This document shows positions 30,643 through 55,600 of a stretch of DNA of 64,000 nt, one piece after another. The notes beneath the pieces are model-generated. The model was not told where the DNA came from. It ran no database searches and saw only the letters and a list, made by a program, of their open reading frames with translations. Position numbers and translations under genes: made by a program. The stretch's first letter is position 1; every line of letters starts with the position of its first letter. The DNA comes from Octopus bimaculoides (taxonomy: Eukaryota): positions 144,361,821 through 144,425,820 of the forward strand of contig NC_068984.1 of NCBI RefSeq assembly GCF_001194135.2. Direction: 5' to 3'.

Positions 30643-30756
<114 letters not shown>

Positions 30757-31920: not shown

Positions 31921-31957
31921 AATTAAAAACATAAGTTCTTTTTGTTTTTGTTTCTAG

Positions 31958-32084
31958 AATTTTCCAATGAAAAAAACTCGAATTTGTCCCTTCAATAACA
32001 AACATCGAATTCCGGAGCCAGAATTTCGGTATCATTTGGTTTTATGTCCAGATAAAGCCATTCTTGACCAAGATTTGAAACATG
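31958..32084 (+). CDS. GTSF1: GTSF1-like coding exon 2 (CHHC zinc finger 2)
   Basis: NFPMKKTRICPFNNKHRIPEPEFRYHLVLCPDKAILDQDLKH. Acceptor tttgtttctag, donor GTAAGT; phase 0 to 1. Confidence 0.93.
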
Positions 32085-32319
32085 GTAAGTATTCTAGAAC
32101 TTCCTTACATCAGCACTATTTTGATTTCTTTTCTACTCTAGGCACAAGGCCTGAAATTTTGGGGGAGGTGGAGGGGCCAGTCAATTAGATCGACTCCAGT
32201 ATGCAACTGGTACTTTATCGACCCCAAAAGGATGAAAAGAAGTCGATCTCAGTGGAATTTGAACTCAGAACGTAAAGACAGACGAAATACTGCTAACATT
32301 TCTGCCAGCTCACCACCTT

Positions 32320-32373
<54 letters not shown>

Positions 32374-32376
32374 AAA

Positions 32377-32417
<41 letters not shown>

Positions 32418-32618
32418 TTAAATGGAATAATGTTGTCCAAATATGAAGAATTTTTAGAGCTCATCCTAGCTTTCAATGTTGTCATTTTCTTTTTCTAAGT
32501 GTTATATATGAACAGCAAGAACTTTTAAGTGTCAGAATTATAGTCTAAATTCTTCCAGTTACCGTAAATTTGAATTGACCCGTGAGAACTTCAAATGCGT
32601 TTCCTCTCAAATTTTCAG

Positions 32619-32720
32619 CCTGGCTTCAGCAGAATAAAGATGATGAGGAACTTCCTTCTGGGAACCTCGAGGTCCCCGATACGAACTTTCAACTAAACAT
32701 GGAAGAAGATTGGGAAGCAG
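32619..32720 (+). CDS. GTSF1: GTSF1-like coding exon 3 (acidic region with EEDWE motif)
   Basis: AWLQQNKDDEELPSGNLEVPDTNFQLNMEEDWEA. The acidic Trp motif is typical of the PIWI-binding region of GTSF1. Phase 1 to 1, canonical sites. Confidence 0.88.
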
Positions 32721-34167
32721 GTTAGTATTGTCTCTGTTTATAAAGCATTGTAGTTATCAAGCTCTTTTGGAACCAAGGGAAGTATCATTTCTACATAGAG
32801 TGCACTCTGGATATTGGTGCCTCTTGGGACCCAGGTAAGTAATTCTCTACATAAGAGTATTGTGGTTATTGAGTTCTCTTGTGACTTGGTTAATTAGAGA
32901 CAATTCTCTACATTCAGACTATTGGAATTGTGTTTTCTAGAACTTGTTGCTTGTTCAGAGAAGCAGAGAATAGTTAAACATTACATTTGACAGAGTAATC
33001 TGAACACTAAACATGACAACACAATAATAATATGAACCACTGTAAACTTTGTTTTGAGGTGCATTGCAAAGGAATTTGTGTTTTCATTATTGTCAGCTGT
33101 TGAAAGCAAATTGATTATCTATAACTATAAAAGTGTGTGTGTGCGTGCGCATGTATGTTCCTTATGCATTCCAAAACCAAGTTGCCGATTTTAACGTAAG
33201 GGGTATCAAAAGATTCAGGAAGCTTTTGGCTACCAACTAAACTATATTTTCATTCACATATTTGTATTACAAAAAATTAACATTATCATTTTTCTTTTAG
33301 TCACCTGTCGTAAATGACCTTTTATATCACCACCACAATTATGATGACATCACATTTTCTACACGAGTGTGTCGATGACTGACAAGTACATGTGTGTGAC
33401 AGTATACATGTCTGTCAGTATACGTATATTTTTGTGATGCCTCACACACACACACACACACATTTAAAGACAGACACACACACAGGGACAGAGATAGGCT
33501 TCAAGTGTACGTTAATTTGTGTCTCTTAGTTTATGTATGCGACTCCTCCCCCCCGCAAACAGTGAAACGTGCCAATATTGAAAGTTTACTTGTGGCCTGG
33601 ACTTTATAAGAAGTTTTACACAGGTTAGTTCTTGACTCTGGAAGCTTCTCTCATTCTCTCCCTTGTTCTCCCTCTTCCTCCATTGTTCTCTTTCTCCCAT
33701 TCATCCTCTCTCTCTCTCTCTCCCTCTCTCTCTCTGGCTCTGTCTATCTAGTTACATTTGTGTGATGTGCAATGTCTCTCTCTCTCTACCTGTTTGTGTA
33801 TATATCTGCATGCACACATTTGTCTCCAGCACCAAAAACTGTTGTCAAAACAAGTTCAATGTCCAGTCAGCTACGTCAAAGTCTCAGTGCCCAAGCAGCT
33901 GCACCCTATTGTCTCATTCCGTTTATTTATTGACCCTGAAAAAATGAAAGTCAAAGTTGACTTGAGCAGGATTTGAACTTTTGAGTTCTGGGACTCAGAC
34001 CAAATACAGCAGTCTGTTCCCTTTGATGATGTTCTAAGGATTTTGCCAGTTTGCTGCCACTCTTGTACAGTAGTTCAAAGACTTATTTTTTTCATTGAAA
34101 TATATAGCAGAGAAAATATTCTTCAATGTCTCCACTTATGACAATTCTTTCAATAATTCTATTTCAG

Positions 34168-34213
34168 ATTCAGAACAGAAGTTTTTCAAGCTTGGTGCTG
34201 GAAGAATTGCCAG
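34168..34213 (+). CDS. GTSF1: GTSF1-like coding exon 4
   Basis: DSEQKFFKLGAGRIA; atttcag/GTAAAA. Its phase 1 to 2 exactly bridges exons 3 and 5. Confidence 0.75.
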
Positions 34214-35322
34214 GTAAAATGGTTTTTTTTCATTGGTCAACAATCTCATAGTAATCAGTGGAGGGAATGTGGTGGGTGACAGATGTAAGGGAGACAGTGC
34301 CAAGGATGAAGTTAGAGGTACATAGGGATGGAAATGAACAGAGGTAATTGGAGGAAGGGCTACTGTTGGCATAGTAGGGTTGTACAGGGGAAGAAGGGGT
34401 GAAAGGGGCAATCAGTGGAAAATAAGGTAATAAGGGATGATAACTGAGAATGCTTGAGAAAAAGGAAGATTCAGTGGAAGCTGAGAAGCAGGGAAATGAA
34501 ATCTGTGTAGTTCTGCTCTCATAATACAACAGCTGAGTGAACGAAGCCAGGGTAGATGTTAGGGAGAGATTGGGTGTAGAGGCAGAGATAAGGGATAGGC
34601 TTTTAGGTTATCACTTTTGTTTAGATATTACAAAATGTATATAAAAACCAAAACTGTAGCAAAATAAAGAACATACTTTTATGCATGATTTAAAGGCCTT
34701 GTTAATCACAATATAAGTTTGCCGCTTCCCAGCCAGAATGGATGAGGATAGCTGTGTGAAAAAGTGCCACACCCTAGCGGTTGAGGGAAGACCTGGGATG
34801 AAGTGGTGAAGCGTGACCTTCAAACATTAGGCCTCACCGAGGCAATGACATGACCGAGATCTTTAGAAATATGCTGTGCTTTAGAAGACCCGACAAGCCA
34901 AGTGAGACCATAACCTGTGGCCTATGCCAGGGGTGTAACCAGCCCACTTATGCGTACCTTTCCTTCATTGGACACTAAACTCTGCTTGCAAAGACTTGTT
35001 GAGGCAAGTGAAATTGAAATCAAATTCGATGACTGGCACCCATGCTAGTGGAGTGCTAAGAGCACCATTCGAGCGTGACCGTTGCCAGAGCAGCGGACTG
35101 GCTTCCATGCCGGTGGCACGTAAAAAGCACCATTCGAGCGTGATTGTTACCAGCGTCACTTTACATGGAAAGCAGACGTTAAAAGCAAGCATCGGGTTAT
35201 TTTGTCAAACTAAAATTCTTCAAGGTGATGCCCCAGCATGGCCACAGTCTAATGACTGAAACAAGTAAAAGTTAAAAGCTAAAAGAATCAACTTCAAACA
35301 AATTTTTAAATTTTGATTTTAG

Positions 35323-35471
35323 CAGTCATTCCGTGGTGGATACAAACCAAACTGAACTAAGGTTACCGGCTCACAAGTTTAACAACAGTCAAGATAACCT
35401 TCCAGTCTATCAGTTTAGCTCAAATAGTTTGCTGATGGCATCAGAAGGAATTGGACGAGGAAGAGGAAAAG
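35323..35471 (+). CDS. GTSF1: GTSF1-like coding exon 5
   Basis: SHSVVDTNQTELRLPAHKFNNSQDNLPVYQFSSNSLLMASEGIGRGRGK. TAGCAG tandem acceptor; phase 2 to 1. Confidence 0.72.
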
Positions 35472-36709
35472 GTTGGCACTTTTTTTTTATATTCTTGTGA
35501 CTTCATGTTTTTCTTTTTTTAAATGTTTCTTTCCTATTGTCACAGTTTCTTTTTTTTCTCTCTCACTCTGCCTTTCTCTCTTTCTTGCTCTCACTTGCAT
35601 TACCTCTTTCTCTCTTACTTGCTCTGCCTCTCTCTCACTCTTCCTCTTTCTCTATCTAACTCTCTTTCATTCACTCTTCTTTCTCTCTCTCACACTCTCT
35701 CTCTCATTTGATTTTTCTCTGTTGTGAAATCTTTTTCTGTCTTTTTCTTATCTTTTATTTGCTGTTAAAACAATGACCTCTGACCCCTGACCTAATTCAA
35801 CTTCTGTTTTCATCTTACTAAAAGTTTGGTCTTTGCTGAGTTTTGAACCTGGGTCCTTCAACCGCACATCATGTTTTCCTTCTAATCCACCTCTACCATG
35901 TTGGGTGGTAACAGTTTCCCAATTGTTGGGAGATCTGCGAAGTCTTTAAAATTTGGTTTGCATCAATATTGATAGATTTTGGACAGTTGTGGAAGAATTA
36001 CCAGGGCCCTCTGTTAATCAGGGATGACCATGTCTCTGTGTGTCTGATCTGCAGACCTGGACAATATTCTTTTCTGTGCATGTTTTCAGGCAGTCAGGGA
36101 GACTGGTACTTGTCTACAAATCTCCTCTCTCTAGATTGGTGGTTCTCATCTGGGATCTATATAACCCTTGGGGGCCCATATACCCCTTTACTGTTTTATC
36201 CGCAGGAGGGGCTGTGTGATAAGAAGTTTTCTTACTATCCACATGGTTCTGGGTTCAGTCCCACTGCGTGGCACCTTGGGCAAGTGTCTTGTGCTATAAC
36301 CTTGGGCCGACAAAAGTCAATACCAGCCCCCCCCCCCCNNNNNNNNNNNNNNNNNNNNNNNNNNNNNNNNNNNNNNNNNNNNNNNNNNNNGCCATGACTG
36401 GCTCCTGTGCCAGTGGCATGTACAAACCATCAGCTGAACATGGCCAATGCCAGTGCCGCCTGACTGTTGCCATGCTGGTGGTACGTAAAAAACACCCACT
36501 ACACTCTGTGAGTGGTTGGCGTTAGGAAGGGCATCCTGCTGTAGAGACTCTGCCAGATCAGATTGGAGCCTCCTGGATCGCCAGCCCTCAGTCAAACCGT
36601 CCAACCCATGCCAGCATGGAAAGTGGACGTTAAACAACGCTGATGATGTAGAATGTCTGAAATTAAATCAGAAATGTAGAGTTTCATTTTAGCAGCTCAA
36701 AATCAGTGT

Positions 36710-36982
36710 TGGCCCAGACTCAGATGGAGAGGAATTGGAGCGAGGTGGCAGATAAGGTAGAGGCCATAGTACGGAAGTGGTCCGGAAGGGCTCTGTCCTT
36801 GAAAGAAGGGTGGAGGTGGTACAGGTGTTTATTGCATCTATAATCAGTTAGCGCCTGACCGTTGTCCCTTGCCCCGATTCATGGCTAAACAAGTTGGAAC
36901 GACTCCTTTACTGCTTGTTGTGGAAGGGAGGAAAGCCACTTGTAAGGCGCTCCATTTGCTGCCAGGAACCATTAAAGAGCGG
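36710..36982 (+). mobile_element. L1/Tx1-clade LINE RT C-terminal fragment
   Basis: ERNWSEVADKVEAIVRKWSGRALSLK(fs)RVEVVQVFIASII*RLTVVPCPDSWLNKLERLLYCLLWKG, a Tx1-like post-RT motif. Confidence 0.75.
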
Positions 36983-37078
36983 AAATATAATAATAATGAT
37001 GATGGTGATGATGGTGATTAAAATTTTTTTTTTTGCCATTATGTTAATCTAATAACTTTCAAAAACATTGTCTTTCAG

Positions 37079-37261
37079 GTTCAAAACCAGTGGTTCCAGT
37101 TGGCAGAGGAAGAGGAACTTCAGGTTGTAAAGAGAATGTGACGAAATTAGGGAAACCTGGTGCCTCTCAAACTGCAACAAAGCCAGGAAATGCCTCTGCT
37201 GTAGAATCAGCCAAATTATCTGTGTCTGTTGATAAAACTTGGTTACAAGATGTGAATCAAA
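37079..37261 (+). CDS. GTSF1: GTSF1-like coding exon 6
   Basis: GSKPVVPVGRGRGTSGCKENVTKLGKPGASQ...TWLQDVNQ; tctttcag/GTAATT; phase 1 to 1. Confidence 0.72.
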
Positions 37262-39039
37262 GTAATTATATTTTTGATATTATCATCAACTGCTGAAATA
37301 AAATAACCTTTGTCGGCCAACCTCAAGTTTCTGATGTTGTTCATCTGTTATTGCTGCTGCTGCTTTTTGTTTTCATTGAAAATCTCAAAGTGGAAGGAAC
37401 CCAAGTTACCATTTTCTTTCTCTTCCTTTTCTTTTATTATTAATACCTGATGGTATTTGATTGAATTGAGAGTCTACAGACTGATGTGACCAACGAGTTT
37501 AGTCTGTCCTCGTGTAACATACTGAACTAATTGCTTTTCTGCATCAGGACTATAGATGTTGCAATAATCTGGTCCATGTGGAATCTGACAAAGAACTCGG
37601 TTGCTATGCGTTGTGGACAATCACTCTTGTGGAAGGTTGACAGGAGAGTGTAACACTTGTGGAAATGACTGAATGGAGATTGTCATACTTGTTGTCGCAC
37701 TTATTGAGCACTGTCATGTGCACATGTGGAGAACTGTCATGTGCACATGTGTGGCGGCTGCTATAGGACTTATGCAAATGAAGATAGAATTTACCAATTT
37801 TATAATTGATTGGAATTTTATCTTAATTGATTGATCTTTCTGTGTATAAGCAAGGTAAGTGGTTAGGGTAGGATAAGATTGCTGTGTCTGTCTGTCCTCA
37901 TGTGTGACACACAGACACACTTGTGACTCCACCATAATGACAAATACACGAAATTGACTGTTGTTGTACCACCTCACATTGCTGAACAACACCACAAGTG
38001 AATTAGTTGAGGTTTGTGGTTCAAAAGAGCAGAAATGAAAATAATAAAGTGTGATGATGATCAATGGAGGGTTTCGGTAATGATACAATAGGGGCCTGTG
38101 AGATGACTGAAGGTTTTCAGTAATGACACAGTGGGGCAGTAAAACCTTTTAGTGATGGGACAAACGAGATCACAAGATACATCAGTGAAGTAAGCTTACA
38201 TGGAGGAGATTATCTGATTTGTAAAGTTATTGATCTTCGACAATGGCATAATTTTTGGTATTGAGAAACTCAAGGCTGATATCGATCTTTCCGTTAACTA
38301 CAGTTCAATCTTTGGTCATTGCTGTTTATAGAAATGAGACTTACCACGATACACTATTTATTAAATATAGGCGTGGAGCAAGATGTTTGGTGAGGAAAAT
38401 GTAGTTGTAATGTTCATCCATTTTTTTTTTTTTTTTTTTATGGCATCAGCAATGTGAGTGAAGAGGAATTTTTCCAACTGCATTATAACACCATTATAAT
38501 CATCATTGGTATCTCTCGCTGCCAAGAATTGAATTGTATGGTTCTGGAAAAGCAGCACCTTTTGGCAGGTGATGCATCATACAAAACCTCCAATTTATCA
38601 CCAGTTCCCTGCCATACATAACCCCTTTGCTCCCTGGTCTTCCCATTGTAGGGAAACGTCATATTGTGACCAAAGCTTCATCCATTGACTTAGCACCATG
38701 ATCTTCCTAGATGAAATCCTTCACAAGGAAGGTCCACTCTGCCGATTCGGACAAAATTAGAAGGTCAGTCTTTGATAAGAATTGTAATTTACCTGAGTTC
38801 TCAGTGGCAGTTTTCCCAACAGTGCTTCGTGGACAGACACTTTGTTAAGCTGTTCCCAATAGAATTGGTATCTGGCATTCTGATGTAGCAGAATGCTCCT
38901 CTCACTCTTGCAATAACTTTGTGCTACGAAACAAAGATGATCTGATCATTCTGTCAATGATCACCTAACACAATTCACGCACAAGTTCATTTATTTTGTT
39001 CTATGATTAGGGTACCCATTATATATATATATATATATA

Positions 39040-39296
39040 TATTGGGTTGGTGCATAATTATTGCGGCTTTTTTTTTTCAACAAATTTTATTCAGCAAAAA
39101 CAATAACAATATTTAACAAAATCATCTTTAAATGCCGGTCTGACCGTCTGCCAATCAAATGGGAAGCAGTAATTGAAGTAGATGGTGAATATGCTCTGGA
39201 ATAATTATTTAAAGATGTTTTTATTACATGTTGTTATTGTTTTTGTTGAATAAAATTTGTTGAAAAAAGCCGCAATAATTATACACCAACCCAATA
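39040..39296. mobile_element. Mariner-derived MITE with ~95-bp TIRs
   Basis: TATTGGGTTGGTGCATAATT...AATTATACACCAACCCAATA within a (TA)n site. The centre encodes a transposase C-terminal relic (DRLPIKWEAVIEVDGEY). Confidence 0.85.
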
Positions 39297-39367
39297 TATA
39301 TTTATATTGCATGTATACATACTCATGTATAAAATATATTCTTAGATATATATTACAGACACGCATG

Positions 39368-39402
<35 letters not shown>

Positions 39403-39568
39403 CATACCTGCTATTGTTATCTATTTATGTATGAGTTTTGAAAGTTGTATGGGAGTATGTTTAAGAAGTGACATGTCTTCAGAATATCTCTGCAATAAAA
39501 TTTGCTCCACCTTGCTGGTTGTCATTTATTTTAATGACAATTTTTCACTTTGTTTCCATTTCCTTCAG

Positions 39569-39645
39569 ATTGTAAGAAAAAGAAAACCAAGACTAAGAAT
39601 GCCTGTGCCAAAACTGTGATTAAAGAGGAACCACCAACTCCTGTG
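39569..39645 (+). CDS. GTSF1: GTSF1-like coding exon 7 (basic patch)
   Basis: NCKKKKTKTKNACAKTVIKEEPPTPV; tttccttcag/GTGAGA; phase 1 to 0. Confidence 0.78.
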
Positions 39646-41412
39646 GTGAGATTTTCATTTTCTGTTTCTATTTACGCCTCATGCTCTGTGGCAGAGTTAT
39701 GATCAGTCCTGCTGCTTTTGCTAAACATACCAGTATCTTACGCAGCATATAAAAGCATGCCGTTTGATTGGTTGGCAAAGATTTACCGAGTTGCAAACAC
39801 ACTCCAGCCTCTAGACTATACATGTGCTGTCGCCTCACTTTTCCTCTTGTATTACTACTGTTGCAACAGGCTCTGCTCTTCACAACTTGTTTGTTGCATA
39901 CCACTGCCATTCAAACTCTGCAGTAACCATTTAAGCACAGTCGCCCATCCTCAAGATGTCAGACTCGACCTTTTTATACAACAGGTGTTAAGTTGCAGCT
40001 GACTAAAACTAAGTATCAGCTTCAAGTCTGATCAGTCTGAGAGGGTCTGCAAAGGTCATGGATGATAGCTTATTATTTTAAAAGATGTCTTGCAAGGTAC
40101 TTGGTGACCTTGTCGGTGCAGGTGCCACTTAAAAAGTATCCAGTCCACACTGTGAAGTGGTTGGCATTTGGAAATGCATCCTGCGGTAAAAACCTTGCCA
40201 AAACTGACCTCACCTGTGCTTGTGCCATGTAAAAAGCACCAAGTCCACTCTGCTGAGAGGGTTGGACAGTTTGACCAGGTCGGCATGCTGGAAGGCTGAA
40301 CCAGACTCCAGTCTGATTTGGCATATTTTTCTATGGCTGGAGTCTGGTCCAGCCTTCCAACATGCCGACCTGGTCAAACCGTCAACTCATGCCAACATGA
40401 ACATTTATATATATATATAAGTTCAAATAAAAGTTACAAACTTCATTGAGAGATAGCAAAATCCTATGAAAGTTCTGGTTAGTTACCTGTACAAAGAATG
40501 TTGAACATTACAAATAATAGTAAAGATTGTTTGCCAACATNNNNNNNNNNNNNNNNNNNNNNNNNNNNNNNNNNNNNNNNNNNNNNNNNNNNNNNNNNNN
40601 NNNNNNNNNNNNNNNNNNNNNNNNNNNNNNNNNNNNNNNNNNNNNNNNNNNNNNNNNNNNNNNNNNNNNNNNNNNNNNNNNNNNNNNNNNNNNNNNNNNN
40701 NNNNNNNNNNNNNNNNNNNNNNNNNNNNNNNNNNNNNNNNNNNNNNNNNNNNNNNNNNNNNNNNNNNNNNNNNNNNNNNNNNNNNNNNNNNNNNNNNNNN
40801 NNNNNNNNNNNNNNNNNNNNNNNNNNNNNNNNNNNNNNNNNNNNNNNNNNNNNNNNNNNNNNNNNNNNNNNNNNNNNNNNNNNNNNNNNNNNNNNNNNNN
40901 NNNNNNNNNNNNNNNNNNNNNNNNNNNNNNNNNNNNNNNNNNNNNNNNNNNNNNNNNNNNNNNNNNNNNNNNNNNNNNNNNNNNNNNNNNNNNNNNNNNN
41001 NNNNNNNNNNNNNNNNNNNNNNNNNNNNNNNNNNTGTAAGCCTAGTACTTATTCTATCGGTCGCTTTTGCCTAACTGCAAAGTTACGGGGCTGTAAACAC
41101 ACCAGCATTGGTTGTCAAGCGATGTTGGGGGGGACAAACACAAACACACAAACATATACACACACATATATACATATACGATGGGCTTCTTCCAGTTTCC
41201 ATCTACCAAATCCACTCACAAGGCTTTGGTCGGTCCAAGGTGCCACGCATTGGGACTGAACTTGGGATCATGTGGTTGGGAAGCAAGCTACTTACGTCTC
41301 TCTACTTTCTTACCTTATTTATATAGATATAGTGTGCTTGTGAATATGTGTGTGTGTGTAGTAGTAGTGGTAATTTGATATTTCTAAATCTTTAATTTTT
41401 TTCCCAAATCAG

Positions 41413-41520
41413 ACAGCTGAAGATGAAGCCAAAACGATTCGTCGTCTTCGAAAGAAACTTCGTCAGATTAGTCTATTGGAAGAACAAAAGTCTGCTGGAT
41501 TGTCACTTGATAAAGACCAG
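41413..41520 (+). CDS. GTSF1: GTSF1-like coding exon 8 (PYM/eIF2A-like coiled coil, part 1)
   Basis: TAEDEAKTIRRLRKKLRQISLLEEQKSAGLSLDKDQ; 108 nt, phase 0 to 0, donor GTATGT. Confidence 0.82.
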
Positions 41521-41942
41521 GTATGTTACTTCCATCGAACCTTTTGCTTTTAATATGTGACATTATGTCCCTCTCTGTGTGGTCATTCAGTCTGCTAGAA
41601 ATAACAAACTAAAACCCCTATTATTGGAACATCTTTGTGGTTGTCTTTTGAAAACCCAGTTTGTATTTATCAGTATGGTCTATCAGTATGGCTGTCAGTA
41701 ATGGTATATGGTACCTGCTTACAGCTAGGTGGACTGTGAATATGTCGTGATATGTCCTTCTTTGATTATTTTATCTTTTCTCATTTTCTCCCCCTCTCTC
41801 ATCTTTGTCTATATGTTATGCTAACCCCTAACATCCAGTTCTATCTGTGACACCAGCCCCTTGCTTCAGTTTGTTTTGCTACACAGAATTGGCTTTTTTC
41901 TGGCCCCTCAGTAGAGGAATCTGCCTGCTACAGTTCTCAAGA

Positions 41943-41974
<32 letters not shown>

Positions 41975-41977
41975 GCA

Positions 41978-42789
41978 TACGAGGGGAAGTCAAAAATTAT
42001 CTGCAGTTTTGCCATACCATATCTTTATTCTTGTCACACTGCCTTCTGCAAATGCATGCTTATGGTTGGTATTATTGTGGTCATGTGACTGAAGTTTGAG
42101 CCTGATCACACCATCTTTCTTTCTGGCTTTACAGTGTAAANNNNNNNNNNNNNNNNNNNNNNNNNNNNNNNNNNNNNNNNNNNNNNNNNNNNNNNNNNNN
42201 NNNNNNNNNNNNNNNNNNNNNNNNNNNNNNNNNNNNNNNNNNNNNNNNNNNNNNNNNNNNNNNNNNNNNNNNNNNNNNNNTGGCCATTCCACTAGCAATG
42301 GGCACCAAAGAAGAACAAAGAGCAGTGATCCGAGAGATGGTAAGGATGAACTGGTTCACCATTTACCATCTCTTGGAGCTTGCTGAATCTTCTCGTCAGT
42401 GGTGGAGGTTGACAGGCGTCCTGCTCCCTGTCCGGGCGTCATGCTAGTCCGGTCACTTTTAAACTTCTCGATCCCCTCATACAGTCTTCTACATGGTAGT
42501 AATGGACTGTCCCCATATTGTGCTAAAAGCCTCCAATGAATTTCAGCACCTGACACACCTTCTGTCAAGAGAAATCAAATCACTGCTTTTTGTTCTTCTT
42601 TGGTGCCCATTGCTAGTGGAATGGCCATACTTAGACTGTAAAGCCAGAAAGAAAATGGCGTGATCAGGCTCACACTTCAGTCACATGACCATAATAGCAC
42701 CAACCATAAGCATGAATGTGCAGAAGGCAGTGTGACAATAATAAAGATATGTTATGGGGAAAATGTGGATAGTTTTTGACTTCCTTGTG
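41978..42789. mobile_element. Fold-back mariner derivative with ~210-bp inverted arms
   Basis: TA-CGAGGGGAAGTCAAAAA termini. Both arms are the transposon 5' end. The minus strand encodes the transposase N-terminus (EGVSGAEIHWRLLAQYGD...GRLSTSTTDEKI). Confidence 0.85.
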
Positions 42790-42819
42790 TGTGTGTGTGT
42801 GTATGTATATATGTGAAGG

Positions 42820-43190
42820 TGTAATGGTCCAGTGGTTAGGGCAGTGGACTCGTAGCCATAGGATCGCGGTTTCGATTCCCAGACTGGGCGTTGTGAGCGT
42901 TTATTGAGTGAAAATAAAGCTCTACAAGGCTCCAGGAGTGGGTGGTGGTGAACTCTGCTGTATTCTTTCACCACAACTTTCTCTCACTCTATCTTCCTGT
43001 TTCTGTTGTACCTGTATTTCTAAGGGCCAGTCTTGTCAGACTCTGTGTCCCGCTGAATCTCACCGGGAACTACGTTAAGGGTACACGTGTCTGTGGAGTG
43101 CTCAGCCACTTGCACATTAATTTCATGAGCAGGCTGTTCCATTGATCGGATCAACTGGAACCCTCGTTGTCGTAACCGATGGAGTGCCAT
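42820..43190 (+). mobile_element. Full-length tRNA-derived SINE
   Basis: A/B-box head (tggtccagtggttagg...gtttcgattcc) and family tail ending ccgatggagtgcca. Confidence 0.75.
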
Positions 43191-46100
43191 GATATATGTA
43201 TGTATGTATGTACTTACATTGTCAAGAATGTAAATTTGGTTTCCTGTTATTCTACTACTCAATCAAACAATATGCAAAGATTGTAACAGATATTTTCGTT
43301 CTGTTTTTTTTTTTTATTGAGCTTTTCCTAAATCTTTTACACATGAAATATTTCTTGTTATTGTAAGAAATTTTATTTCAGCCTTATTTTCTATCATACA
43401 CTTCATGTAAGTTGACTTTGAATTGTTTTGCTGTAAATTTTTGTGGTTTGAATTTGTTCTGAAAAGTCATGTTTAATTCGGAGTCATTAATTAACAGGTG
43501 TTTACAGTTTTTGGCATTTTTTCATTTTACTGTATATCATCATCACCATCACTCATCATTCACTTCTGTATGCTTGCATGGATCAGATGGAATTTTTTGA
43601 GGCAGATTTTCTATGGCTGGGTGCCCTTCCTGTCACCAACCCACACCTGTTGCCAAAGTAGACGTTTTTTTTTTACATAAGATTGGAAAGAAACAACTTG
43701 TATAACGATGCCACTCATTTACATCTCTCATGTGATGTCTAGATAAAGCTACACACACACCCAACAGATTTCCTTATAGCTTCCTTCTAGAAAACCCCCT
43801 CACAAGGCTTTGGCTGGCCTGGAGTAATAGTAGAAGACACTTGCCCAAGGTGTCACACAGTGGGACTGAACCTACACAGTTAGGAAGCAAGCTTCTCAAC
43901 TACACAACCATGCACACACACACATATATATCTATTTCCAATTTGGTCATGCGTCTCTGCTCTACCCCGAGTGATATTGATGGTAGCAAATTTCTGGTTT
44001 CTTCAATTTTAGGCTCTGAGGCTTTACTGTCTGGTTTCATGTCTTTGTAATGTGTATATCAAAGTTCTTAGTTTAGTAAATCAATTAGATTTAATTACAA
44101 TCTATTCATACTATAAACTAGGTGAGGTCTTTGAAATTACTTATTGAGTACTGCCTTGGTACTTTACTAATACCTTGTGTCCTGAGAAATATTTCCATCT
44201 TAATTATGCATATGTGTGTGTGTGTCATTGTAAAGGAAAGCTGTTTTCCTGTGATGAAACACAACAGCTCTTCGCGTATTTGTGTTAAAATCTGCTGGAA
44301 CTTAAGAATATTGTGTGGTAAGAAGCTTGCTTCCCAACCACGTGGTTCCGGGTTCAGTCCCACTGCGTGGCACCGTGGATAAGTGTCATCTGCTATAGCC
44401 TGAGGCTGACCAAAGGCTTGTGAGTGGATTTGGTAGACAGAAACTGAAAGAAACCCATCGTACATATGTGTGTGTGTGTGTGTGTGTGTGTGTCCTCCAT
44501 CATCACTTGACAACTGATGTTGGTGTGTTTACGTCCCCCTAACTTAGCAATTCGGTGAAAGAGACTGATAGAATAAGTACTAGGCTTACAAAGAATAAGT
44601 CGTGGCATCAATTTGACCGACTAAATGCGGTGTTCCAGCATTTTCATGTCTTACAATTTGATGACGTCATCTTCCCTCACAAAATTTTCACTTGTAAAGA
44701 AAACTTGTACCTGAAGTGTACCATCTACACACTGCCACCAGGTTCATATCCAGGATTCACAATCAAAATATCATTTTATAATTTTCAATCTTTCTTGTGT
44801 TTTAAAGTTATTTCACTTTTGATTTTTTTTTTTTTCCAATCTTTTAAATTTAAAAAAAAAAAATTTTTTTTTTTACCCTTTCCTGTTCAGATCATTCTTC
44901 CAAATTATAATCCTTATTTATCCTCATTGTTTAGAATTAATTATGGATTATCTTGTGGCTTCAAGATGTCCATGATACAATTGTTTATTTTTAGAATGAT
45001 ATTATAGAGGAGGAGTGGGGGGCCACATCTGGCCAGTTTGAATATAAAACAGAATATTTGAGTTGGACTTGGCCAGTTTAAATGCTAAAGGATGGAAAAG
45101 GATGGGGTGGGTGAGTCAGATTAGGGAGTTTCTCTAAGTTCCTTGTTTTATAAGTTTTGTTCTTTCTGTTCAAACATTTAAAGTTATTTCACCATTTTTA
45201 AAATTTATTTATTTCAATATTTCTTACAAATGTTTAAAAGTTATTTTAATGTTTTCTGTTCCTGTTTTTCTTTGAAATGTTTAAACAAAAAATTTGGGGT
45301 GGTGGTGGTAAGAATATCTACATGTTTACCACATATTGAGAGGAGTGGTGGTGGTCTTTACATGTGGTACTACATGTTGGGTAAACATTGGCTGCTTTGG
45401 CCAACCACGTGTTCTGAAATGTCATGGACACTGCTCTTTCCTCCAGATCATCATCATTTAACATCCGTTATCCATGCTGGCATGGGTTGGACGGTTTGAC
45501 TGGGACGGCACGCTGGAAGGCTGCACCAGACTCCAGTCTCATTTGGCATGGTTTTCTAAAGCTGAATGCCCTTCCTAATGCCAACCACTCCGAGAGTGTA
45601 ATGGGGGCTTTTATGTGCCACCGGCATGACACCAGTATCTGCCACAACTGCGATTTTGCTTGGCTTGATGGGTTTTCTCAAGCACAACATAATGCCAAAG
45701 GTCTTGGTCATTGCTTCCGTGAGGCCCATCTTGAAACAAAAAAGAAAAAATAAATTTGTAAAGATTTAGTCAGTAAAACTGGTCAATCAGTGATTGTTTC
45801 CTGTCGAATAAATTGGGCTGTGCCAGGATATGAAGTATAAATTATTTCCGACATAACTTTTGTTCAACAATGTCCCTTACGACAGACATTTTTGTTTCGG
45901 ACATGTCATTTTACACATACACCACTCCTTGTTGGGTACTTACCCCTTCAGCTGTACCCTTTTATTTTGGTACTTACCCCTTTAACCATTTGTTTTGCCA
46001 GTGTCCTTTCAAGCTTATATTGTTTCTGATTTTAATCCCCTTTTCTCTACAAATCCCCGGATTAGTTTTCTCAACACAGGTACAAAGCTACAGGTTTGCA

Positions 46101-47556
46101 TGAGAAGAGTAGCTGATTAGACTGACCCCCAAAATTGAGCTGGTATTTATTTTATTGATCCCTAAGGATGGAAGGCAAGGCCAGTCTTGACACGATTTTA
46201 TCTCAGAACATTTAGGAACAAACGTGGCCGATGCCAGTGCTGCCTTGACTGGCTCCCGTGCCAGTAGCATGTAAAAAGCACCATCCGATCGTGGTCGATG
46301 CCACCCACCTATGGCTCCTGTGCTGGTGGTACGTAAAAAAAAGCACCCTCTACACTCTCGAAGTGGTTGGCGTTAGGAAGGGCATCCAGCTGTAGAAACA
46401 CTGCCAGATCAGGCTGGAGCCTGGTGCAGCCTCCTGGCTTCCCAGACCCCAGTTGAACCGTCCAACCCATGCCAGCATGGAAAACGGACATTAATCAATG
46501 ATAATGAAACAAAAGACATTTTCTCTATTAAATTAAACAGATCCTACTTTTTGGAACGAGGTGTCTTACCTCCACCACGTGGATAATGTAGACAAATTAT
46601 TCAATGCTAAGAACAGCCAATGATAACCTCAACATCATCCACGCTACGTTATGGGTTTCTTTCCCGAGACACAATGCTTTTATCCTGAATTGATGAAAGA
46701 GAGCATGAGGTCTGATGACACCAAAGATCTTCAAAACCCATCAATACTTAAAAGAATCTTAATGTTGACAGACAGACAGACACATTCTGAGTTTTATATA
46801 TATATAGATGACTCACACTTGTTATAGACTCTTATTATTCTGTTTATGAGAGAAGTGATATTCTTTGAGTACGCACAGCTATGGTCTATGATGTTGGATT
46901 GTGTCAGTCTTTGTGTAAACATAGCAATGGTGCAGGGTTATGACATTCCCTCTAAAGATAACTGTGATGTGCTTGTGATCAGGAATTTGTGATCTTCTTT
47001 CTTTGTAATCATAGCTGTGATATGTGATACTGTCCTCTCAGAATTAAGTATTTCAGAATGCCACTTATCATCATCATCATTGTTTAACATCTTCTTTCCA
47101 TGCTGGCATGGGTTCGGATGGTTTGACTGAGGACTGGCAAGCCAGAAGGCTGCACCAGGCTCCAATCTTATCTGGCAATGTTTCTACGGCTGGATGCCCT
47201 TCCTAATGCCAACTGCTCCAAGAGTGTAGTGGGTGCCTTTTACATGTCACTGGCACCTTACAAAGGTTTCAATTGCTTGTCATCTCCTCCATGAGACCCA
47301 ACATTCGAAGATCAAGCTTCACCACCTTATCCTATGTCTTCCTGGGTCTACCGCTTCCACAGGTTCCAGCACTAAACTATATTTCTCAACACAGGCCGGT
47401 CCCTACAGTTTCTTATGTTACAGTCACATCCTCATACTAAAAATATTGTTCACACTTACTCTAACAATTCAACCAATTGTGCCCTGAATAAACTTTGTCA
47501 AATGTTTGAATTTTTACTGATTTAAAAAAAATTTTCTGTTCTTTTTCATTCATTAG

Positions 47557-47615
47557 ATCGCCAAAATAGCAATGAAAGAGACGTTATGTAAACAACTCGA
47601 ATCCCTAGAATTAAG
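47557..47615 (+). CDS. GTSF1: GTSF1-like coding exon 9 (PYM/eIF2A-like coiled coil, part 2)
   Basis: IAKIAMKETLCKQLESLEL continues the exon 8 motif. Acceptor ctttttcattcattag, donor GTCAGT (phase 2). If unspliced, it stops at 47631. Confidence 0.8.
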
Positions 47616-48454
47616 GTCAGTCTGTTTATGAGTATTTTGATTCTTAAAAAAAAGAATAACTCTAGAAGACCAATATTTTGTTTTTGGGATTTAGATATGG
47701 GATTTCTCTTTTATTGAAGCTATTCACCCTCACTTCAACCTCCAAACATTGAAAGATGTCATTTAATGTATAGAGATACAAGCTACAAATAACTCTTTGT
47801 TTTGGTGATGCTGGTCTACACAGATTTTTATAACACGCCTTGTGTCTCCAAGTAATCTTCAAGCTTTGAGCACATGCTCTGTTTAATTTGAAAACTGAAC
47901 ACTGATACAAAAGAAAAATGAGAAGGCAAATGCTAAAAGTGGAACGGTAAATAAAAATAGAGAAAAGAAATTAGTTATGTCCCCTTTGACTATAAAGCCA
48001 TAATCAAGCTGGTGATTGTAGAATAATTCAATGGAAAAGGTTCCAAAGCCTGCGAGACAACTGCTCGATCGGGTGAGGGTGGTGTCCTCCAGTTTGCCAA
48101 AAGGAATTTGTCCAGATGTTTGCATTTGCTGAAACTCAGCAGTGCAGTGGAATTCTTAGATCTAAAAAGAACGTGATCTTCCAACTATGCATAAGTTGCA
48201 TTTCTTAGATCCATTAAGAAGAATTGGGGAGAAATGTAATCTCAGAAGGCTAAACCTCACAAAGAAGATAAAGGAGCTCCACAGAAGAGATGATTTTTGG
48301 TTGAAGCAACCATGCAGCCCATGTACAATGGAAAAGTACATGTAAAAATGTTGATGAAGATGACACACACACACGTGTGTGTGTGTGTATATATATATAT
48401 TCTTACTACAAATCTCCTCTTATAGATGTAATAATCCATTCTTCTACTATTACC

Positions 48455-48503
48455 GTCTCTGATGAAGGGATACATTGGATCTTCCTTGAAACAGCTGTAA
48501 GAC
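48455..48503 (+). ncRNA. Minimal type I hammerhead ribozyme-like motif (Penelope-type)
   Basis: GUCU-CUGAUGA-[AGGGA...UCCUU]-GAA-AC-AGCU-GU-A|AGAC: intact core, 4-bp stem I, palindromic stem III loop, GUA cleavage triplet. Confidence 0.65.
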
Positions 48504-48646
48504 TTTATACATAAAATATAATTCTAACTTTGCCATTGGTCTCTTTATCCTTTTCTTTCTTTATACATANNNNNNNNNNNNNNNNNNNNNNNNNNNNNNN
48601 NNNNNNNNNNNNNNNNNNNNNNNNNNNNNNNNNNNNNNNNNNNNNN

Positions 48647-48680
<34 letters not shown>

Positions 48681-49111
48681 GAATGGTATGACAACAAGGG
48701 ACTGACTGAGACCTTGATATTATGTAATTAGAGGAATTTATCTGTAATATAATATGTGACAATTATTCGGTTGCCTGGATGTTGGGGTGGAAATCTGCTC
48801 TGGCATCTCGTCAGTTAAGACAATCAAAAAATGCCAGACATCCGAAACTCAGTGTTTTATTATGACAACCAAATAATTGTCACATATATTGCAGATATGT
48901 GTGTGTGTGTGTGTGTATATTTGTTGGTGGGGGGGGGGATCACAAAGAAGGTGAGTATTCAAATATAGGCTTTGTCGGAAGCTGAGGTAGATTTAGTGAT
49001 GTTGTTTTAGAGTATAAGTCCAGTGTGCCTTGCTGAGGTTCAAGTAAATCAGCACAGTTACCTTTCAAACACTGAACTTCCTACAAATGGTTTTTCTTTT
49101 CTCTTTTCCAG

Positions 49112-49121
49112 AGACCATTGA
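49112..49121 (+). CDS. GTSF1: GTSF1-like putative terminal coding exon (R-D-H-stop)
   Basis: Strong acceptor (tttttcttttctcttttccag). Phase 2 joins exon 9 to give AGA GAC CAT TGA. Confidence 0.5.
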
Positions 49122-51717
49122 TGACTAGTGGAGCCTTAACTGCCGAAATTCTTTGAATTTATATATTCAGAAATATTTTATTTTCCTTTCTAAACATTTG
49201 TCAGAAACCTGGTGAATACTGAACTCAAGACGTTTGAGTTTCTATCGCAGCAAGTATTGTGTTGTCCTTAGACAAGACTCTTAACACAACATGCTTTGCA
49301 AATAATAATAATAATAATAATTTTTTAAAAAATCATCCCACCTTTTAAAAAAAAAATTCTAATAATCTAATATTTTTTCCCCTTAAATTCATTTTCCATT
49401 ACAAGTTTGGAAAATGCATCAAAATATGAGAGAAAATGATATCTGAGACTTCAAATTGTTTGCTAAGGGCTTGTGCAATCACTGTGAGCTGGAATTAAAA
49501 AAAAAAAAGAAAAGAAATTGTCTCATGACATCTTTTTGTTGCTACAAGTTCAATTCTTCAATTGTTAGTTGAAGTTACACTCTAACCTCCAGCCCCAAAT
49601 CTCTTGTCTTAATCCTAATCCTTAACCCCTAACCCCACATCAGCTGTATGATCGAACACCACGGGGAAAATTTCTTTCACATTTGACTCAGTAAATCATT
49701 AATGCTGAGAAGAAACCTTTAAATTTCTATTAATGTAGAAGAATGTAAGTTTGGTCTCAATAAGCTAAGGTCATTAATTTTTAATTAATCTTTTTCACTA
49801 CATCACAACTTGCTCAAAAATGTCACCCCAAACCACATAATTGCCTTCACATGACTGACATGTTAAGATCTCCCTTCATATTTCTCTGGTAGAATCATTA
49901 GAGTTGGACTTAAATACTAAGCAGCATTTCTTTCTACACATGTTCTGGTTTCAAATTCTGTCAGGGTTGGCTTTGCTTTCATTCCTTTCGGGGTTGATGA
50001 GTACCAGTTGATCACTTGGGTTGATGTAATCCACTAGTGCCCTCCCATCAAAATGTCAGGCCTTGTGCCTATAGTGGAATTTATTATTATTATTATTATT
50101 ATTATTAATGCTCTGAATTGGCAAAAACCTTTTTTTATGCCAGACATAATGCCTAGCAGTCTTTGTTCTGGTCCTTTTATAGTCTGAGTTCAAAGACCAT
50201 CAAGGATGATTTTTGCCTGTCATCCTTTCATGGTCAATAAAATAAAGGAGCAGCTAAAGACTGACAAATGACTTGTCCCCTCCCCTCAAAATTATCAGCA
50301 TTCTGTCTATATTCAAAACTTTATTAGTGGGGCAGTTGTTGGCATTTATTTGTAGAGAATCGGACAGACTGTCTGGCAGTATTTGCGTTTCTTTAGGTTC
50401 CAGTTCCAATTTTGCCATAGTTGACTTTCGTCTTTCGTGTTATCATAACAATCACCAATTGTGACAGTTCCACCATTATTATCTCACTACTTGTACTATT
50501 TCTATTTGTGTTGCATTTTGAGTGAACCTCCTATTCATTGTATTACTATTGGCTTCACAAATGATAGAATTATGAACATTACCATTACTAGCATTATTAT
50601 TATATTATAAAAGAAATCATTATTATGAATAACAGCAGCAACAGTATAAAGATGAGGAAGTGTAATAAAAGTAATGATAATAATTACAATAATAGTGGTA
50701 GAGGCTACGGCAGTTATATTAGCAACCATAATGGAAATAAGATAAATTAATCTGCAAAATGAGGCAGTATTACAGTGACCTATTGTGGTATAACACTCCC
50801 CATGGTCTACAAATATTATACAATTGGTTAGGAAGTTTTCCAATGTCTTGGAGAAGCACTTCCCTCTGTCTCGTAGCTATAGTAGAATCTTTAACCAACA
50901 CAAAATTAAGCTCTCTTTTTTTGTATAACACCTATTCTGGTTGATAATGCTGCTATTAATCAGCTTAGGATTAGTAAGGATTCCCTCAATAATAGTAATG
51001 GCATTAACCCTACCTGGAATTCATTCTTGCTCAACATATCGTGTATGTAGCAGTCTGTGGGCTAAGTTCCAACACTCATTCGATTAGAGATTATAATCCT
51101 GTTGGTGGTTAGGGGCAATGATAGTCTAATAATAATAATAATAATAATGATCAAATATATTAGTAATGGCAATCACAACTGTAATGATAATATGAAGAAT
51201 GCCAATAGTTGTGTTACCAGTAATTGTACAATGAACACCCATCATTTACATAATAATTCTTATAATAGTGACATACTAACACCCTGGCAGTTACAATGTT
51301 AAATGTTCCAGCTGATCCAATTGATGGAACAGCCTGCTCGTGAAATTAATAGGAAAGTGGCTGAGCGCTCCTCAGGCCTCCTTAATGTAGTTCTCACGGA
51401 GATGTGACGTAACACAATGTAACCAGGTTGGCCCCTTGAAATACAAGTACAACTCAGTTTTGCACTGCAGCAATAAAGTGAAATCAAGTGTCTTGCTCAA
51501 GGACACAACATGCCATCGGGAGTCAAACTCATGACCCTCTGATCGTGAGCCAAGTACCCTGACCACTAAGCCACAAACACCTTCAATATTGTCTATAAAT
51601 GTAACATTAGAACTCACCTACGTATATTTACTTACTCAGAGGTGGGTTGAGAAATAACACTATCTATTCCCTTTGTCATCAATTCATGAATCTGTACCCT
51701 TCACATTCTCCCTATTT

Positions 51718-51773
51718 GTCACCGATGACAGAATGTCCCATACTCTGGGATATCCCAGAAACAGCTGTAAGAC
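51718..51773 (+). ncRNA. Degenerate hammerhead-like motif (same family as 48455-48503)
   Basis: GUCA-CCGAUGA...GAAACAGCUGUAAGAC shares a 16-nt 3' block with the 48.5-kb motif, but U4 is changed to C. Confidence 0.4.
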
Positions 51774-52249
51774 CTTGAATATTTTTCCAATAATGTATAT
51801 GACTTGAGCTGTTTGCCTTAACGTTTGTTGTCCTCTTTAACAATTCTATATCCGTTGCATCGGAAATCTGCAATGGCTCCATAACTACCTTCTCGGCTGT
51901 AATCTCGGAGCCCAAGTAATCCGTTACAGCACTTACCTTGCGTACCTAATCTATTAGATCACCTGTGAACTAAACCCCCATACTTTGTGTATTTACTTAT
52001 GTAGGTTCTTCTTCTTTCAAATTAAGATTTATGTAATCTACTTCACACCTTTTCGAAGGATAAATGAAACGAAAGCACTGTTCTCCAGAAAGTCTGGGAG
52101 TTAGAAAACAAAATGTTGAATTTTGTTTTCATTTAATGTGGAGCTTTATCACACACGCTAAGCCATTTGTTAACAATAGATAGGATTGTAATCTCTGCTG
52201 TATGGAATTGTTGGAAATCTAAAATGCACAAGAGAGGTTCTTTTATTCT

Positions 52250-52622: not shown

Positions 52623-55600
52623 TGTTTGCTTTTAATAGATTGAACAAACTAAAGGTTTATACTTCTATAGGACTGAATGCTAAACCTGGGGTACATACCT
52701 TCATCACCAGTGACAGGATTTATGATTTATCTTCGCAGCCTAGCATACCTCTGTCATTATGGTTGTAACTGATCATATTCAAACAACCCTTTGTTCTAAC
52801 GACACATACTGATGATTGTTAGCGGACGTTAAACGATGATGATGATTTTATATTCCTCATTATTTATATTTAATAACTTTTTGTCAGTTTACTTTTAGCA
52901 CTGGCTTATCTATAATAACTGTCACCATCTCTAGTTACACACCTAATTCTTTATAATTTATTATTCTATAAACTCTCTTGACACTATTTAGCATATAGGG
53001 CCTCTGTAACTCTTACAATTTTTAACATTGTCTTATTAAGCCCAAGAATTACATTATTTACATTTGACGGCTATTTGTCCTCATCTTGTTTGTAAATAAT
53101 TCCTCCTCTCTTAAATATAGAACTGTATAATCCCAATAATTTTAAATCACTAGGGAATGTTTTATCTATTGTACCAGAACAATTTTAATTAACTTACTTT
53201 ATTCTAAATAATTTCTGGCAACTTTGGTTGTTATAAACATTAATGCCTTTGGATTATCACGTTTATCAGTTCTGCTTTTCTTTCTCAATTAAGCTCTGGT
53301 CTTTCAACTGACAGATTCTTTGCAGCTAAGTAACCGATAACTTCTTACTGTGTTGGTCAAGCTCTCATTATTATTATTCTAGGATGTTCATTTATTCATT
53401 CATGCCAATACCATCTTCCTCTGTACGTGATTTATCTTTTTCTTTCTTTTCCTTTTACCTCCCCTTCTTTCCTTCTTCCAGAATTCTGCAGAGAACCGAG
53501 CTCAGCTGCAGTTTTAACTGCCATTATTTGCTGGATCTCTTGTCACTACATTCCGAGTGCAAGTTCCGCTGAGGTCGACTTTGCCTTTCATCCTTTCGGG
53601 GTCGATAAATTAAGCACCAGTTGCGTGCTGGGGTCGACGCGATCGACTATCCACCCACACTCAATTTCCTGGCCTTGTGCCTATAGTAGAAAGGATCATT
53701 AGCTGAATCTCCATTAAATGATGCTAATATACTTGTTGTTCAATAATATTGTTTTGGATCAAACGAATGCTGACTTTTAAGGTAATATTATAACAGTAAA
53801 CGTCTCTTTTTTCCCCTTTGAGCCACATTGGCAGCTGCCTTTGAACATGTTTTGATGGGGGACCAGATGTCATGCTTGGTTCCTTATTATCTGCAACTGT
53901 TGGTCTTTGTGGATGAGGTCACAAGACTTAATGACTTCTTTAGGATTATTAATGCCTTTAACTGCCCTTATATTTGACTTTATTCTACCATCCACCCCTC
54001 TCGATTGGCAGGTTGCAGACGCACCCACCTTCAATTTCTTAAATGTTGGTAATTATGATTTTAACTTCACTTGTTGATAAATCAACCAGTCACACGTTAA
54101 TATGGTTGCCTGATAAGTTGGGTGTTATGTAGCGTTAGACAGTCTAACTAAATTCTATTATGCTTATGTCATAATATAGACTCTGAATGAAATAATTGAA
54201 GCAATTACCAGAAAGGCCCATTAGTCTATATAATATATATACACACTCACATACATACACTGTGCCTTGGAAAAAAGATGGGATGGCCATGGCTGGAACG
54301 TCTTTTCACACAAGTTTGCTCAATAAGGACTGACTGACAGCTAAACAATAACACACAAACATATCTTTATAAACATAAATACATAAAAAAAACAAGCTAA
54401 CACCAATTGCTTTGAATTTGTTTATTCCAATCAAACTTTTAGATATGCCAATCTATACAACTTGTCTTGTCTTATTTTTTTTTTCTGATATTTTTTTCTT
54501 GCAATTAAATTTGCAAAATGAAAAGTTCTACAAAAATGGAAGATGTTCTTCCTGCCAAAAATTAAAAAAAAAACAATTTTAGTCTAAAGTTCAGTGATTG
54601 CTGGTAATTAGTAATTGTGGTGGTGATACTAGNNNNNNNNNNNNNNNNNNNNNNNNNNNNNNNNNNNNNNNNNNNNNNNNNNNNNNNNNNNNNNNNNNNN
54701 NNNNNNNNNNNNNNNNNNNNNNNNNNNNNNNNNNNNNNNNNNNNNNNNNNNNNNNNNNNNNNNNNNNNNNNNNNNNNNNNNNNNNNNNNNNNNNNNNNNN
54801 NNNNNNNNNNNNNNNNNNNNNNNNNNNNNNNNNNNNNNNNNNNNNNNNNNNNNNNNNNNNNNGGGGGGAGAGAGAAAAATACAATTTGTTATGAAATACT
54901 TTTAATTGAATTGGACATAAAGGGTGTCATAGAAATTAAAATTCTTTACCCTTTTTTTTTTTCTTTCTTCTATCCTACAGGTGCTCAAATAGTTGATTGT
55001 ATTTAGATATTTACACAGAGTGTAAGGAAGGGGTTCGTATGCAGTGTTGAAACAATCATTACTTTCTATTGTACTGCAGCTCTACACAAAAAAAGCTCCA
55101 TAAAGGTGAGGGCTACTATTTTCAGGCTTATTAAAACAGTTCAACACTCAGGTGTTAAAGTGGTCGAGAAACAACTGGAATTAAGTACAGATTCCGGTGT
55201 AAGAGTACAACTTGTAAGGCAGAAGTGAGTGAATTTTTATCTAAGAATGAAAAAGACTGCTTGCCTTCTGACATTAAAATTCTAGTTGAGATTATTGTGT
55301 AACATAAGAGTGTGTTTCAAGGGAGGGAGATTTCAACAGACAATAAATGTTGGGGGGGGGGGGAATTCTCACTCACACACACACACCTATACACACATAC
55401 AAACACTATTGATAATGCTTTTTTTATATTAAGCAGAAAAGATCACCTATGCAATATATACACATACAAATATGTATATATGTATATATATATATATATA
55501 TACTCGTGTGTATATATAGACACACACAAAGATATATGTACATCATACACTTATGTACATACATATTTATATATATATATATATAGTAACACACACAAAT

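Follow-up and report, generated by a model that had tools for sequence, protein, structure and literature searches.

Hammerhead ribozymes of Penelope-like elements (PLEs) are minimal: helix III is short or absent, with positions 15.2–16.2 and loop 3 forming a palindrome, and helix I is short, 4–5 bp (Cervera & de la Pena 2014, PMC4209133). Helix II is long (6–8 bp), an unpaired base follows A9, and the pair G10.1-C11.1 is highly conserved. Most genomic copies are solitary. In vitro, single minimal hammerheads of this type give no detectable cleavage and their dimers show only low activity (PMC4209133). PLEs favour microsatellites as insertion targets and carry their hammerheads near the 3' end (PMC8557442). 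Metazoan non-LTR retrozymes consist of tandem repeats of 170–400 bp units with a type-I hammerhead in each (Cervera & de la Pena 2020, PMC7229834), and a preprint proposes them as derivatives of PLEs (bioRxiv 10.64898/2026.07.22.740005). Two further systems are relevant in the form in which PMC4209133 cites them: the amniote intronic hammerheads HH9 and HH10 (de la Pena & Garcia-Robles 2010), and newt satellite 2 and avocado sunblotch viroid, in which an unstable helix III is extended by pairing two copies (Forster et al. 1988).

Here we describe a hammerhead motif in the last coding intron of a GTSF1-like gene of Octopus bimaculoides. The window, that is, the whole stretch of DNA analysed, is 64,000 nucleotides long. 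We read the motif, at a probability of about 0.75, as a lineage-specific retroelement hammerhead fragment that is an inert passenger in its host gene. The fragment would be short and AT-rich, either the 5'-truncated end of a PLE or a solitary retrozyme-like unit, and would have entered a (CA)n(TA)n microsatellite of the last GTSF1-like intron after O. bimaculoides split from O. sinensis and O. vulgaris. The ribozyme would have served its source element in the processing of multimeric transcripts, with two copies paired through ACAGCUGU to give a long helix III and a double hammerhead. At its present location it would cleave the pre-mRNA little or not at all and would have no conserved role in GTSF1 expression. 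Minimal PLE and retrozyme hammerheads are already known by thousands across invertebrate genomes, and one more solitary intronic copy adds little.

A sequence-only reading had placed a hammerhead motif with an intact core at 48455–48503 and predicted cleavage after 48499. Each feature that it listed is found in the sequence, GTCT CTGATGA AGGGA TACATTGGATCT TCCTT GAA AC AGCT GT A AGAC, and we confirm a type-I hammerhead motif with an intact core, for which cleavage is predicted after A48499. Its parts are as follows:

48455–48503, plus strand: type-I hammerhead motif, whole (direct reading and descriptor search of the window)
48455–48458 (5' strand) and 48500–48503 (3' strand), plus strand: helix I, 4 bp, GUCU/AGAC (motif sequence)
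48459–48465, plus strand: core CUGAUGA, C3 to A9 (motif sequence)
48466–48470 and 48483–48487, plus strand: helix II, 5 bp, with a 12-nt loop at 48471–48482 (descriptor search)
48488–48490, plus strand: core GAA, G12 to A14 (motif sequence)
48491–48498, plus strand: helix III and its loop, the 8-nt palindrome ACAGCUGU
48499, plus strand: A17, predicted scissile bond 48499/48500

All core nucleotides are kept (C3 U4 G5 A6 N7 G8 A9 / G12 A13 A14 / A15.1-U16.1 / H17). At the level of complementarity, three helices adjoin the core; loops cap helices II and III, and helix I is left open. Helix II comprises the pairs A-U, G.U, G-C, G-C and A-U, one of them a G.U. Helix III consists of two base pairs, AC/GU (A15.1-U16.1, which is A48491-U48498, and C15.2-G16.2), around a 4-nt AGCU loop.

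The PLE minimal hammerheads (PMC4209133) are among the closest of the described systems. The motif has the same type-I topology and intact core, a very short helix III within a dimerising palindrome (the 8-nt ACAGCUGU), and a helix I without loop 1 whose 4 bp fall within the PLE range; the solitary state of most copies, the microsatellite context and the low activity expected are likewise shared. Unlike the PLE hammerheads, it has A48466-U48487 in place of G10.1-C11.1, and no unpaired base separates A9 from position 10.1: the best register is unbulged, with 5 bp, whereas the bulged register makes only 3 pairs, two of them G.U. The papers searched give no number for the effect of an A-U pair at 10.1-11.1, and we count it only as a departure from the conserved pair. 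Helix II, with 5 bp and a 12-nt loop, is shorter than the 6–8 bp of PLEs. No pLTR or RT-endonuclease ORF is detectable, and the 71 longest ORF pieces of the window gave no Pfam match to an RT or GIY-YIG remnant. The family to which the motif belongs is known from one diverged relative, because no further hammerhead of the family was found in about 270 kb of Octopus DNA (the window and a further ~210 kb beyond it). Octopus DNA sampled through a LINE endonuclease ORF likewise contained no member of the family; a match to the 14-mer GAAACAGCTGTAAG at 17247 of one locus sampled from the genus was rejected, as it lacks hammerhead features.

The segment that carries the motif also resembles the metazoan non-LTR retrozymes (PMC7229834). 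It is a short unit, with at least 169 bp visible and ~246 bp if the size of the adjoining gap is real, it is AT-rich (GC 0.31, below 45%), and it has one type-I hammerhead with a palindromic loop 3. In contrast to these retrozymes, it is present as a single copy and not as a tandem array, the motif has neither a 6-bp helix I with loop 1 nor loop-loop contacts, and the 169-nt segment is not strongly self-paired (folding z-score −0.61). Like HH9 and HH10, the octopus motif lies on the sense strand in an intron of a protein-coding gene; the amniote ribozymes are described there as ultraconserved, efficient monomers, whereas the motif is absent from two congeners, has no Rfam match and is predicted to be out-competed in folding. 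Like newt satellite 2 and the viroid, it could extend helix III by pairing of two copies, to 8 bp through ACAGCUGU. In those systems, as cited, the partner is supplied by tandem multimeric transcripts, whereas the nearest partner of the motif, at a distance of 3.27 kb, is defective in its core.

The sequence-only reading had called the motif a minimal Penelope-type hammerhead. The palindromic short helix III and the short helix I bear this out; the bulge after A9, the pair G10.1-C11.1 and a remnant of RT or endonuclease do not appear. The most fitting label is a PLE- or retrozyme-type hammerhead with two departures from the consensus, and not a tandem retrozyme. Its retroelement origin, which the same reading had proposed, is well supported by the lineage-specific segment within a microsatellite and by other PLE-type hammerheads nearby; as to the class of element, we infer a PLE or retrozyme from the features above.

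The exon peptides identify the host gene as GTSF1-like, with a double CHHC zinc finger (LOC106881919, Octopus bimaculoides). Isoform X1 (XP_014787926.1) ends in ...LESLEL(R)DH*, and the O. sinensis and O. vulgaris proteins also end in ...LESLELRDH. This C-terminus requires a donor AAG|GTCAGT at 47615/47616, an acceptor ttttccag|AGACCATTGA at 49111/49112 and a stop codon at 49119–49121, and the recorded CDS range, 30505–49121, is consistent with this placement of the last exon:

47557–47615, plus strand: penultimate coding exon, IAKIAMKETLCKQLESLEL + AG (exon peptides, isoform X1)
47616–49111, plus strand: last coding intron (donor AAG|GTCAGT, acceptor ttttccag|A)
49112–49121, plus strand: start of the last exon, which completes an Arg codon and continues with Asp-His-stop (TGA, 49119–49121), followed by 3' UTR (isoform X1)

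Since the X1 ending requires this donor and this acceptor, the motif lies on the sense strand of the last coding intron, with 839 nt separating it from the donor and 608 nt from the acceptor. The placement of the motif in the sense strand of the last GTSF1 intron thus agrees with the X1 C-terminus, the splice sites and the CDS range. We considered and rejected a position 3' of the stop codon, reached by isoform X2 with unspliced read-through, because a further exon at 49112 is evident from X1 and from the proteins of O. sinensis and O. vulgaris.

Isoform X2 (XP_014787928.1) contains two tiny exons, 43382–43408 and 47571–47591, and its C-terminus, PYFLSYTSYRQNSNERDVM, is not seen in other species; it probably arose as an artefact of gene prediction. 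In O. sinensis and O. vulgaris the annotation splits the orthologue, so that the N-terminal zinc-finger part appears as a protein of its own: in O. sinensis it lies on another contig, of 23.9 kb, and in O. vulgaris on one equal in length to the contig of the C-terminal model. The C-terminal halves bear the unrelated names 'eukaryotic translation initiation factor 2A' and 'Partner of Y14 and mago'. The intron 5' of the penultimate coding exon holds three copies of a SINE-like repeat (...CATGCTGGCATGGGTTGGACGG...), at 45447–45612, 46338–46505 (minus strand) and 47071–47241, two of the three forming an inverted pair. About 1.36 kb of the last intron of O. sinensis and O. vulgaris is missing from O. 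bimaculoides (O. sinensis locus 28937–30296, against window position 48217).

Comparing the last intron among the three Octopus species shows that O. sinensis and O. vulgaris both lack the motif at the orthologous position. The orthologous loci align to the window at 84–94% identity on either side of the motif. In both congeners the empty site reads ...GATGAAGATG(AC)7(AT)6TAATAATGGTATGAC..., an uninterrupted microsatellite. In O. bimaculoides the order is (CA)6C(GT)7(AT)6, then 169 bp, then a 77-N gap, then (AT)14AAATAGGAATGGTATGAC:

48363–48400, strand not applicable: left-flank microsatellite (CA)6C(GT)7(AT)6 (sequence)
48401–48569, plus strand: lineage-specific segment with the motif, at least 169 bp, GC 0.31, running into the gap (ortholog alignment)
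48570–48646, strand not applicable: gap of 77 N in the assembly, adjoining the 3' end of the segment, also in CM046604.1
48647–48679, strand not applicable: right-flank (AT)n microsatellite (sequence)

This clear comparison of filled and empty sites, the useful outcome of the analysis, places the motif in a discrete segment with (AT)n on both sides. Because the orthologous site in the two congeners is an uninterrupted microsatellite, the motif is not conserved in the gene, and the comparison dates the copy as lineage-specific. A segment inside a microsatellite fits the insertion bias of PLEs (PMC8557442), and a 5'-truncated insertion would have this appearance. The change is probably an insertion in the O. 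bimaculoides lineage, although a deletion between the (AT)n tracts gives the same picture among three species without an outgroup. The filled site suggests that, once the species had split, an element with a hammerhead was mobile in the O. bimaculoides lineage. No second copy of 48401–48569 was found in about 270 kb of Octopus DNA. Nor did we find a tandem unit around the motif, its nearest relative being 3270 nt away.

A chimeric contig is possible at this position, because the segment adjoins a gap and is joined to the unique left flank only through the 38-nt microsatellite. The segment could then be an assembly artefact, 169 bp from elsewhere in the genome that were linked to the intron through a simple repeat beside a scaffold gap. 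The gap persists at chromosome level: the record CM046604.1 is 100% identical to the window on both sides of it and contains the same 77 N. On the other hand, the segment and the left flank are contiguous in one contig, a real insertion would be consistent with the flanking (AT)n tracts, and the ~270 kb of available Octopus DNA contains no second copy of the segment. We therefore consider such an artefact unlikely and retain the insertion of a retroelement fragment as the preferred reading.

The sequence-only reading had also noted a related motif 3.2 kb downstream on the same strand, and this relative is present:

51718–51773, plus strand: older, degenerate relative, GTCA CCGATGA ...TGGGATATCCCA GAAACAGCTGTA|AGAC (16-mer match, MAFFT)

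It lies 3.27 kb downstream of the motif and 2.6 kb past the stop codon. The two share the exact 16-mer GAAACAGCTGTAAGAC and align across the whole hammerhead with one 7-nt gap (MAFFT). Given the aligned 3' halves, the calculated chance of a match to GTCTCTGATGA with at most two mismatches within the 50 nt upstream is ~0.006. The downstream copy keeps the same palindrome and GUA|AGAC; its U4 is C, its position 2.1 is A, and it has 7 extra nucleotides, so that no helix II abuts the core. With U4 changed to C, its core is, as judged from the sequence, dead. O. sinensis and O. vulgaris have this copy at the orthologous position, and all three species share its CCGATGA; the downstream copy is therefore the older of the two. 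The flanks of the two copies show no significant similarity outside the hammerhead. A degraded full Penelope-like element spanning the 3270 nt between the copies, which lie on the same strand, was considered and rejected: no long ORFs lie between them, and the three plus-strand frames of 48647–52000 gave no Pfam match to an RT or endonuclease. The copies thus do not bound a recognisable PLE as its terminal repeats. O. sinensis and O. vulgaris have, immediately 5' of the downstream relic, a stretch of ~270 bp (O. sinensis locus 35726–35997, against window 51666–51670); it is a dispersed repeat that matches window 49837–49998 in reverse orientation.

Could AT-rich intronic DNA have spelled the hammerhead consensus by chance, without retroelement ancestry? 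We searched the window with a type-I descriptor (4 bp or more in helix I, then CUGANGA, a bulge that may be absent, 4 bp or more in helix II, GAAA, a short helix III of any kind, and U-H). The full descriptor matches one locus in the window, 48455–48503, where 0.012 matches per window are expected from 1500 dinucleotide-preserving shuffles. Requiring a palindromic 15.1–16.1 segment lowers the expectation to 0.0013 per window (1500 dinucleotide shuffles). A palindrome-requiring descriptor, shaped in part after the matches had been seen, has two matches in the window against 0.0067 expected, and none of the 1500 shuffles reaches two. Rfam hammerhead families include Hammerhead_1, Hammerhead_3, HH9 and HH10. 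The hammerhead families of Rfam were not matched by the motif at the gathering score or at E<=10, in slices of 4.5 kb and 91 nt, so the check by covariance model that the sequence-only reading had proposed came out negative.

Chance resemblance would account for this failure of the Rfam models, for a hammerhead fold that is not the minimum free energy (MFE) structure and has a folding z-score of −0.48, and for the finding of a single relative, the flanks of which differ from those of the motif. Moreover, at the measured rate a genome of ~2.7 Gb would contain dozens to hundreds of chance matches, and the window may be one of many scanned for motifs. Against it, only 0.0013–0.012 matches are expected per window, the second copy has both halves of the hammerhead in register, and the motif lies inside a discrete, lineage-specific segment bounded by microsatellite, as an inserted element would. 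In addition, the window itself and other DNA of the genus contain bona fide PLE-type hammerheads. We judge chance resemblance improbable and favour descent from a retroelement.

The pattern GATGA...GAAACAGCTGTAAGAC had no match in a viral collection; its nine metagenome matches were rejected as chance, being microbial-looking contigs without CUGAUGA or helices. A literature text search for strings of the motif, including CTGATGAAGGG, returned nothing relevant.

Folding was predicted with ViennaRNA. The hammerhead fold has an energy of −2.4 kcal/mol, compared with −9.4 kcal/mol for the MFE structure, and a Boltzmann weight of 4.5e-6. In the MFE structure, a hairpin GUCUCU/AGGGAU ties up helix I together with C3-U4 and the 5' strand of helix II; when the whole 169-nt segment is folded, this box is predicted to pair with a downstream pyrimidine run. 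For the homodimer, the double hammerhead has −20.7 kcal/mol and the MFE structure −26.1 kcal/mol. The catalytic fold is thus predicted to be strongly out-competed, by ~7 kcal/mol in the monomer and, even in the homodimer, by ~5 kcal/mol. Nearest-neighbour energies leave out tertiary stabilisation of the hammerhead core, and inactivity is for this reason a prediction. Little or no cleavage is expected from a lone copy in which helix III has only 2 bp and helix I 4 bp, the pair at 10.1-11.1 is A-U, and a competing hairpin is stronger. The motif is probably an ordinary transposon-derived hammerhead relic that is inert, and we infer inactivity on these modelled grounds.

The sequence-only reading had further suggested that the ribozyme could cut unspliced or read-through GTSF1 transcripts. 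This would be an exapted intronic ribozyme: active when dimerised or when assisted by host factors, it would cleave the GTSF1-like gene's last intron or its read-through transcripts and thereby modulate a factor of the piRNA pathway. The sense orientation in the last intron and the intact core nucleotides are compatible with such a role; the 8-nt palindrome allows pairing between two copies, and the copy at 51.7 kb keeps both the palindrome and GUA|AGAC. Copies with an intact core are also rarer than decayed ones in the Octopus DNA examined. However, the orthologous intron of the two congeners is without the motif, which leaves no conserved function, and the predicted folding penalty holds for monomer and homodimer alike. 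There is no tandem partner. The partner copy at 51.7 kb, located past the last exon, is dead in its core. In a heterodimer of the two, cleavage would fall at 51769/51770 and not at 48499/48500, because the core of one copy faces the 16.1-17-1.x strand (GUA|AGAC) of the other. PLE minimal hammerheads are poor cleavers even as dimers (PMC4209133). Retrozymes are reported in the preprint to be depleted from introns, which suggests selection against active ones there (bioRxiv 10.64898/2026.07.22.740005). Nothing beyond position and orientation favours an action on GTSF1 transcripts, and the claim is not supported; we regard exaptation as very unlikely.

A narrower version is less probable still: a young, cleavage-competent ribozyme, specific to O. 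bimaculoides, might sever the last GTSF1-like intron, either paired with sister-copy transcripts or aided by host factors. If so, a transposon-derived ribozyme would lower the output of a piRNA-pathway cofactor in one species. More generally, an active motif would offer a rare example of a ribozyme from a transposon at work on a gene that silences transposons, and nothing found points there.

The window and the orthologous loci contain other hammerheads and repeats. A textbook PLE-type minimal hammerhead lies within 23125–23175 on the minus strand (GACAA-CTGATGA-A-GGCTG...CAGCC-GAA-ACGT-T-GTGTC), with the bulged A, G10.1-C11.1, an ACGU palindrome and one mismatch at 1.1-2.1. It follows by ~70 nt a tRNA-like SINE head with A and B boxes, for which ARAGORN made no call, within 23125–23330 (minus strand); this arrangement suggests a SINE-like element carrying a Penelope-type ribozyme. 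An inverted partial copy lies at 23327–23363, and the family shows inverted head-to-head copies, typical of PLE insertions. The O. sinensis locus has copies of this family at 7351–7559 with decayed cores (CTAATGA, CAAAATG, or the box deleted), and in the window a copy at 53050–53122 keeps only the tail. Homology between the flanks of the GTSF1-like intronic motif and the 23-kb element is not significant. In the O. vulgaris locus, a minimal hammerhead at ~22150–22200 on the minus strand, CTGACGA-A-GAGCtccGCTC-GAAACGTC (GAA-ACGT-C), again has the bulged A, G10.1-C11.1 and ACGU, forms three of five helix I pairs and is antisense within the range of a recorded gene model (locus 10001–48245). A loose hammerhead-like match at 15420–15480 on the minus strand of the window (CTGAAGA ... 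GAAAATTA, with a 43-nt loop 2) is probably due to chance. Finally, part of a LINE-type endonuclease ORF lies at 24277–24888 on the plus strand. Among named proteins, it is most closely related to 'craniofacial development protein 2-like' of Octopus, with faint to weak recorded matches to Exo_endo_phos (PF03372).
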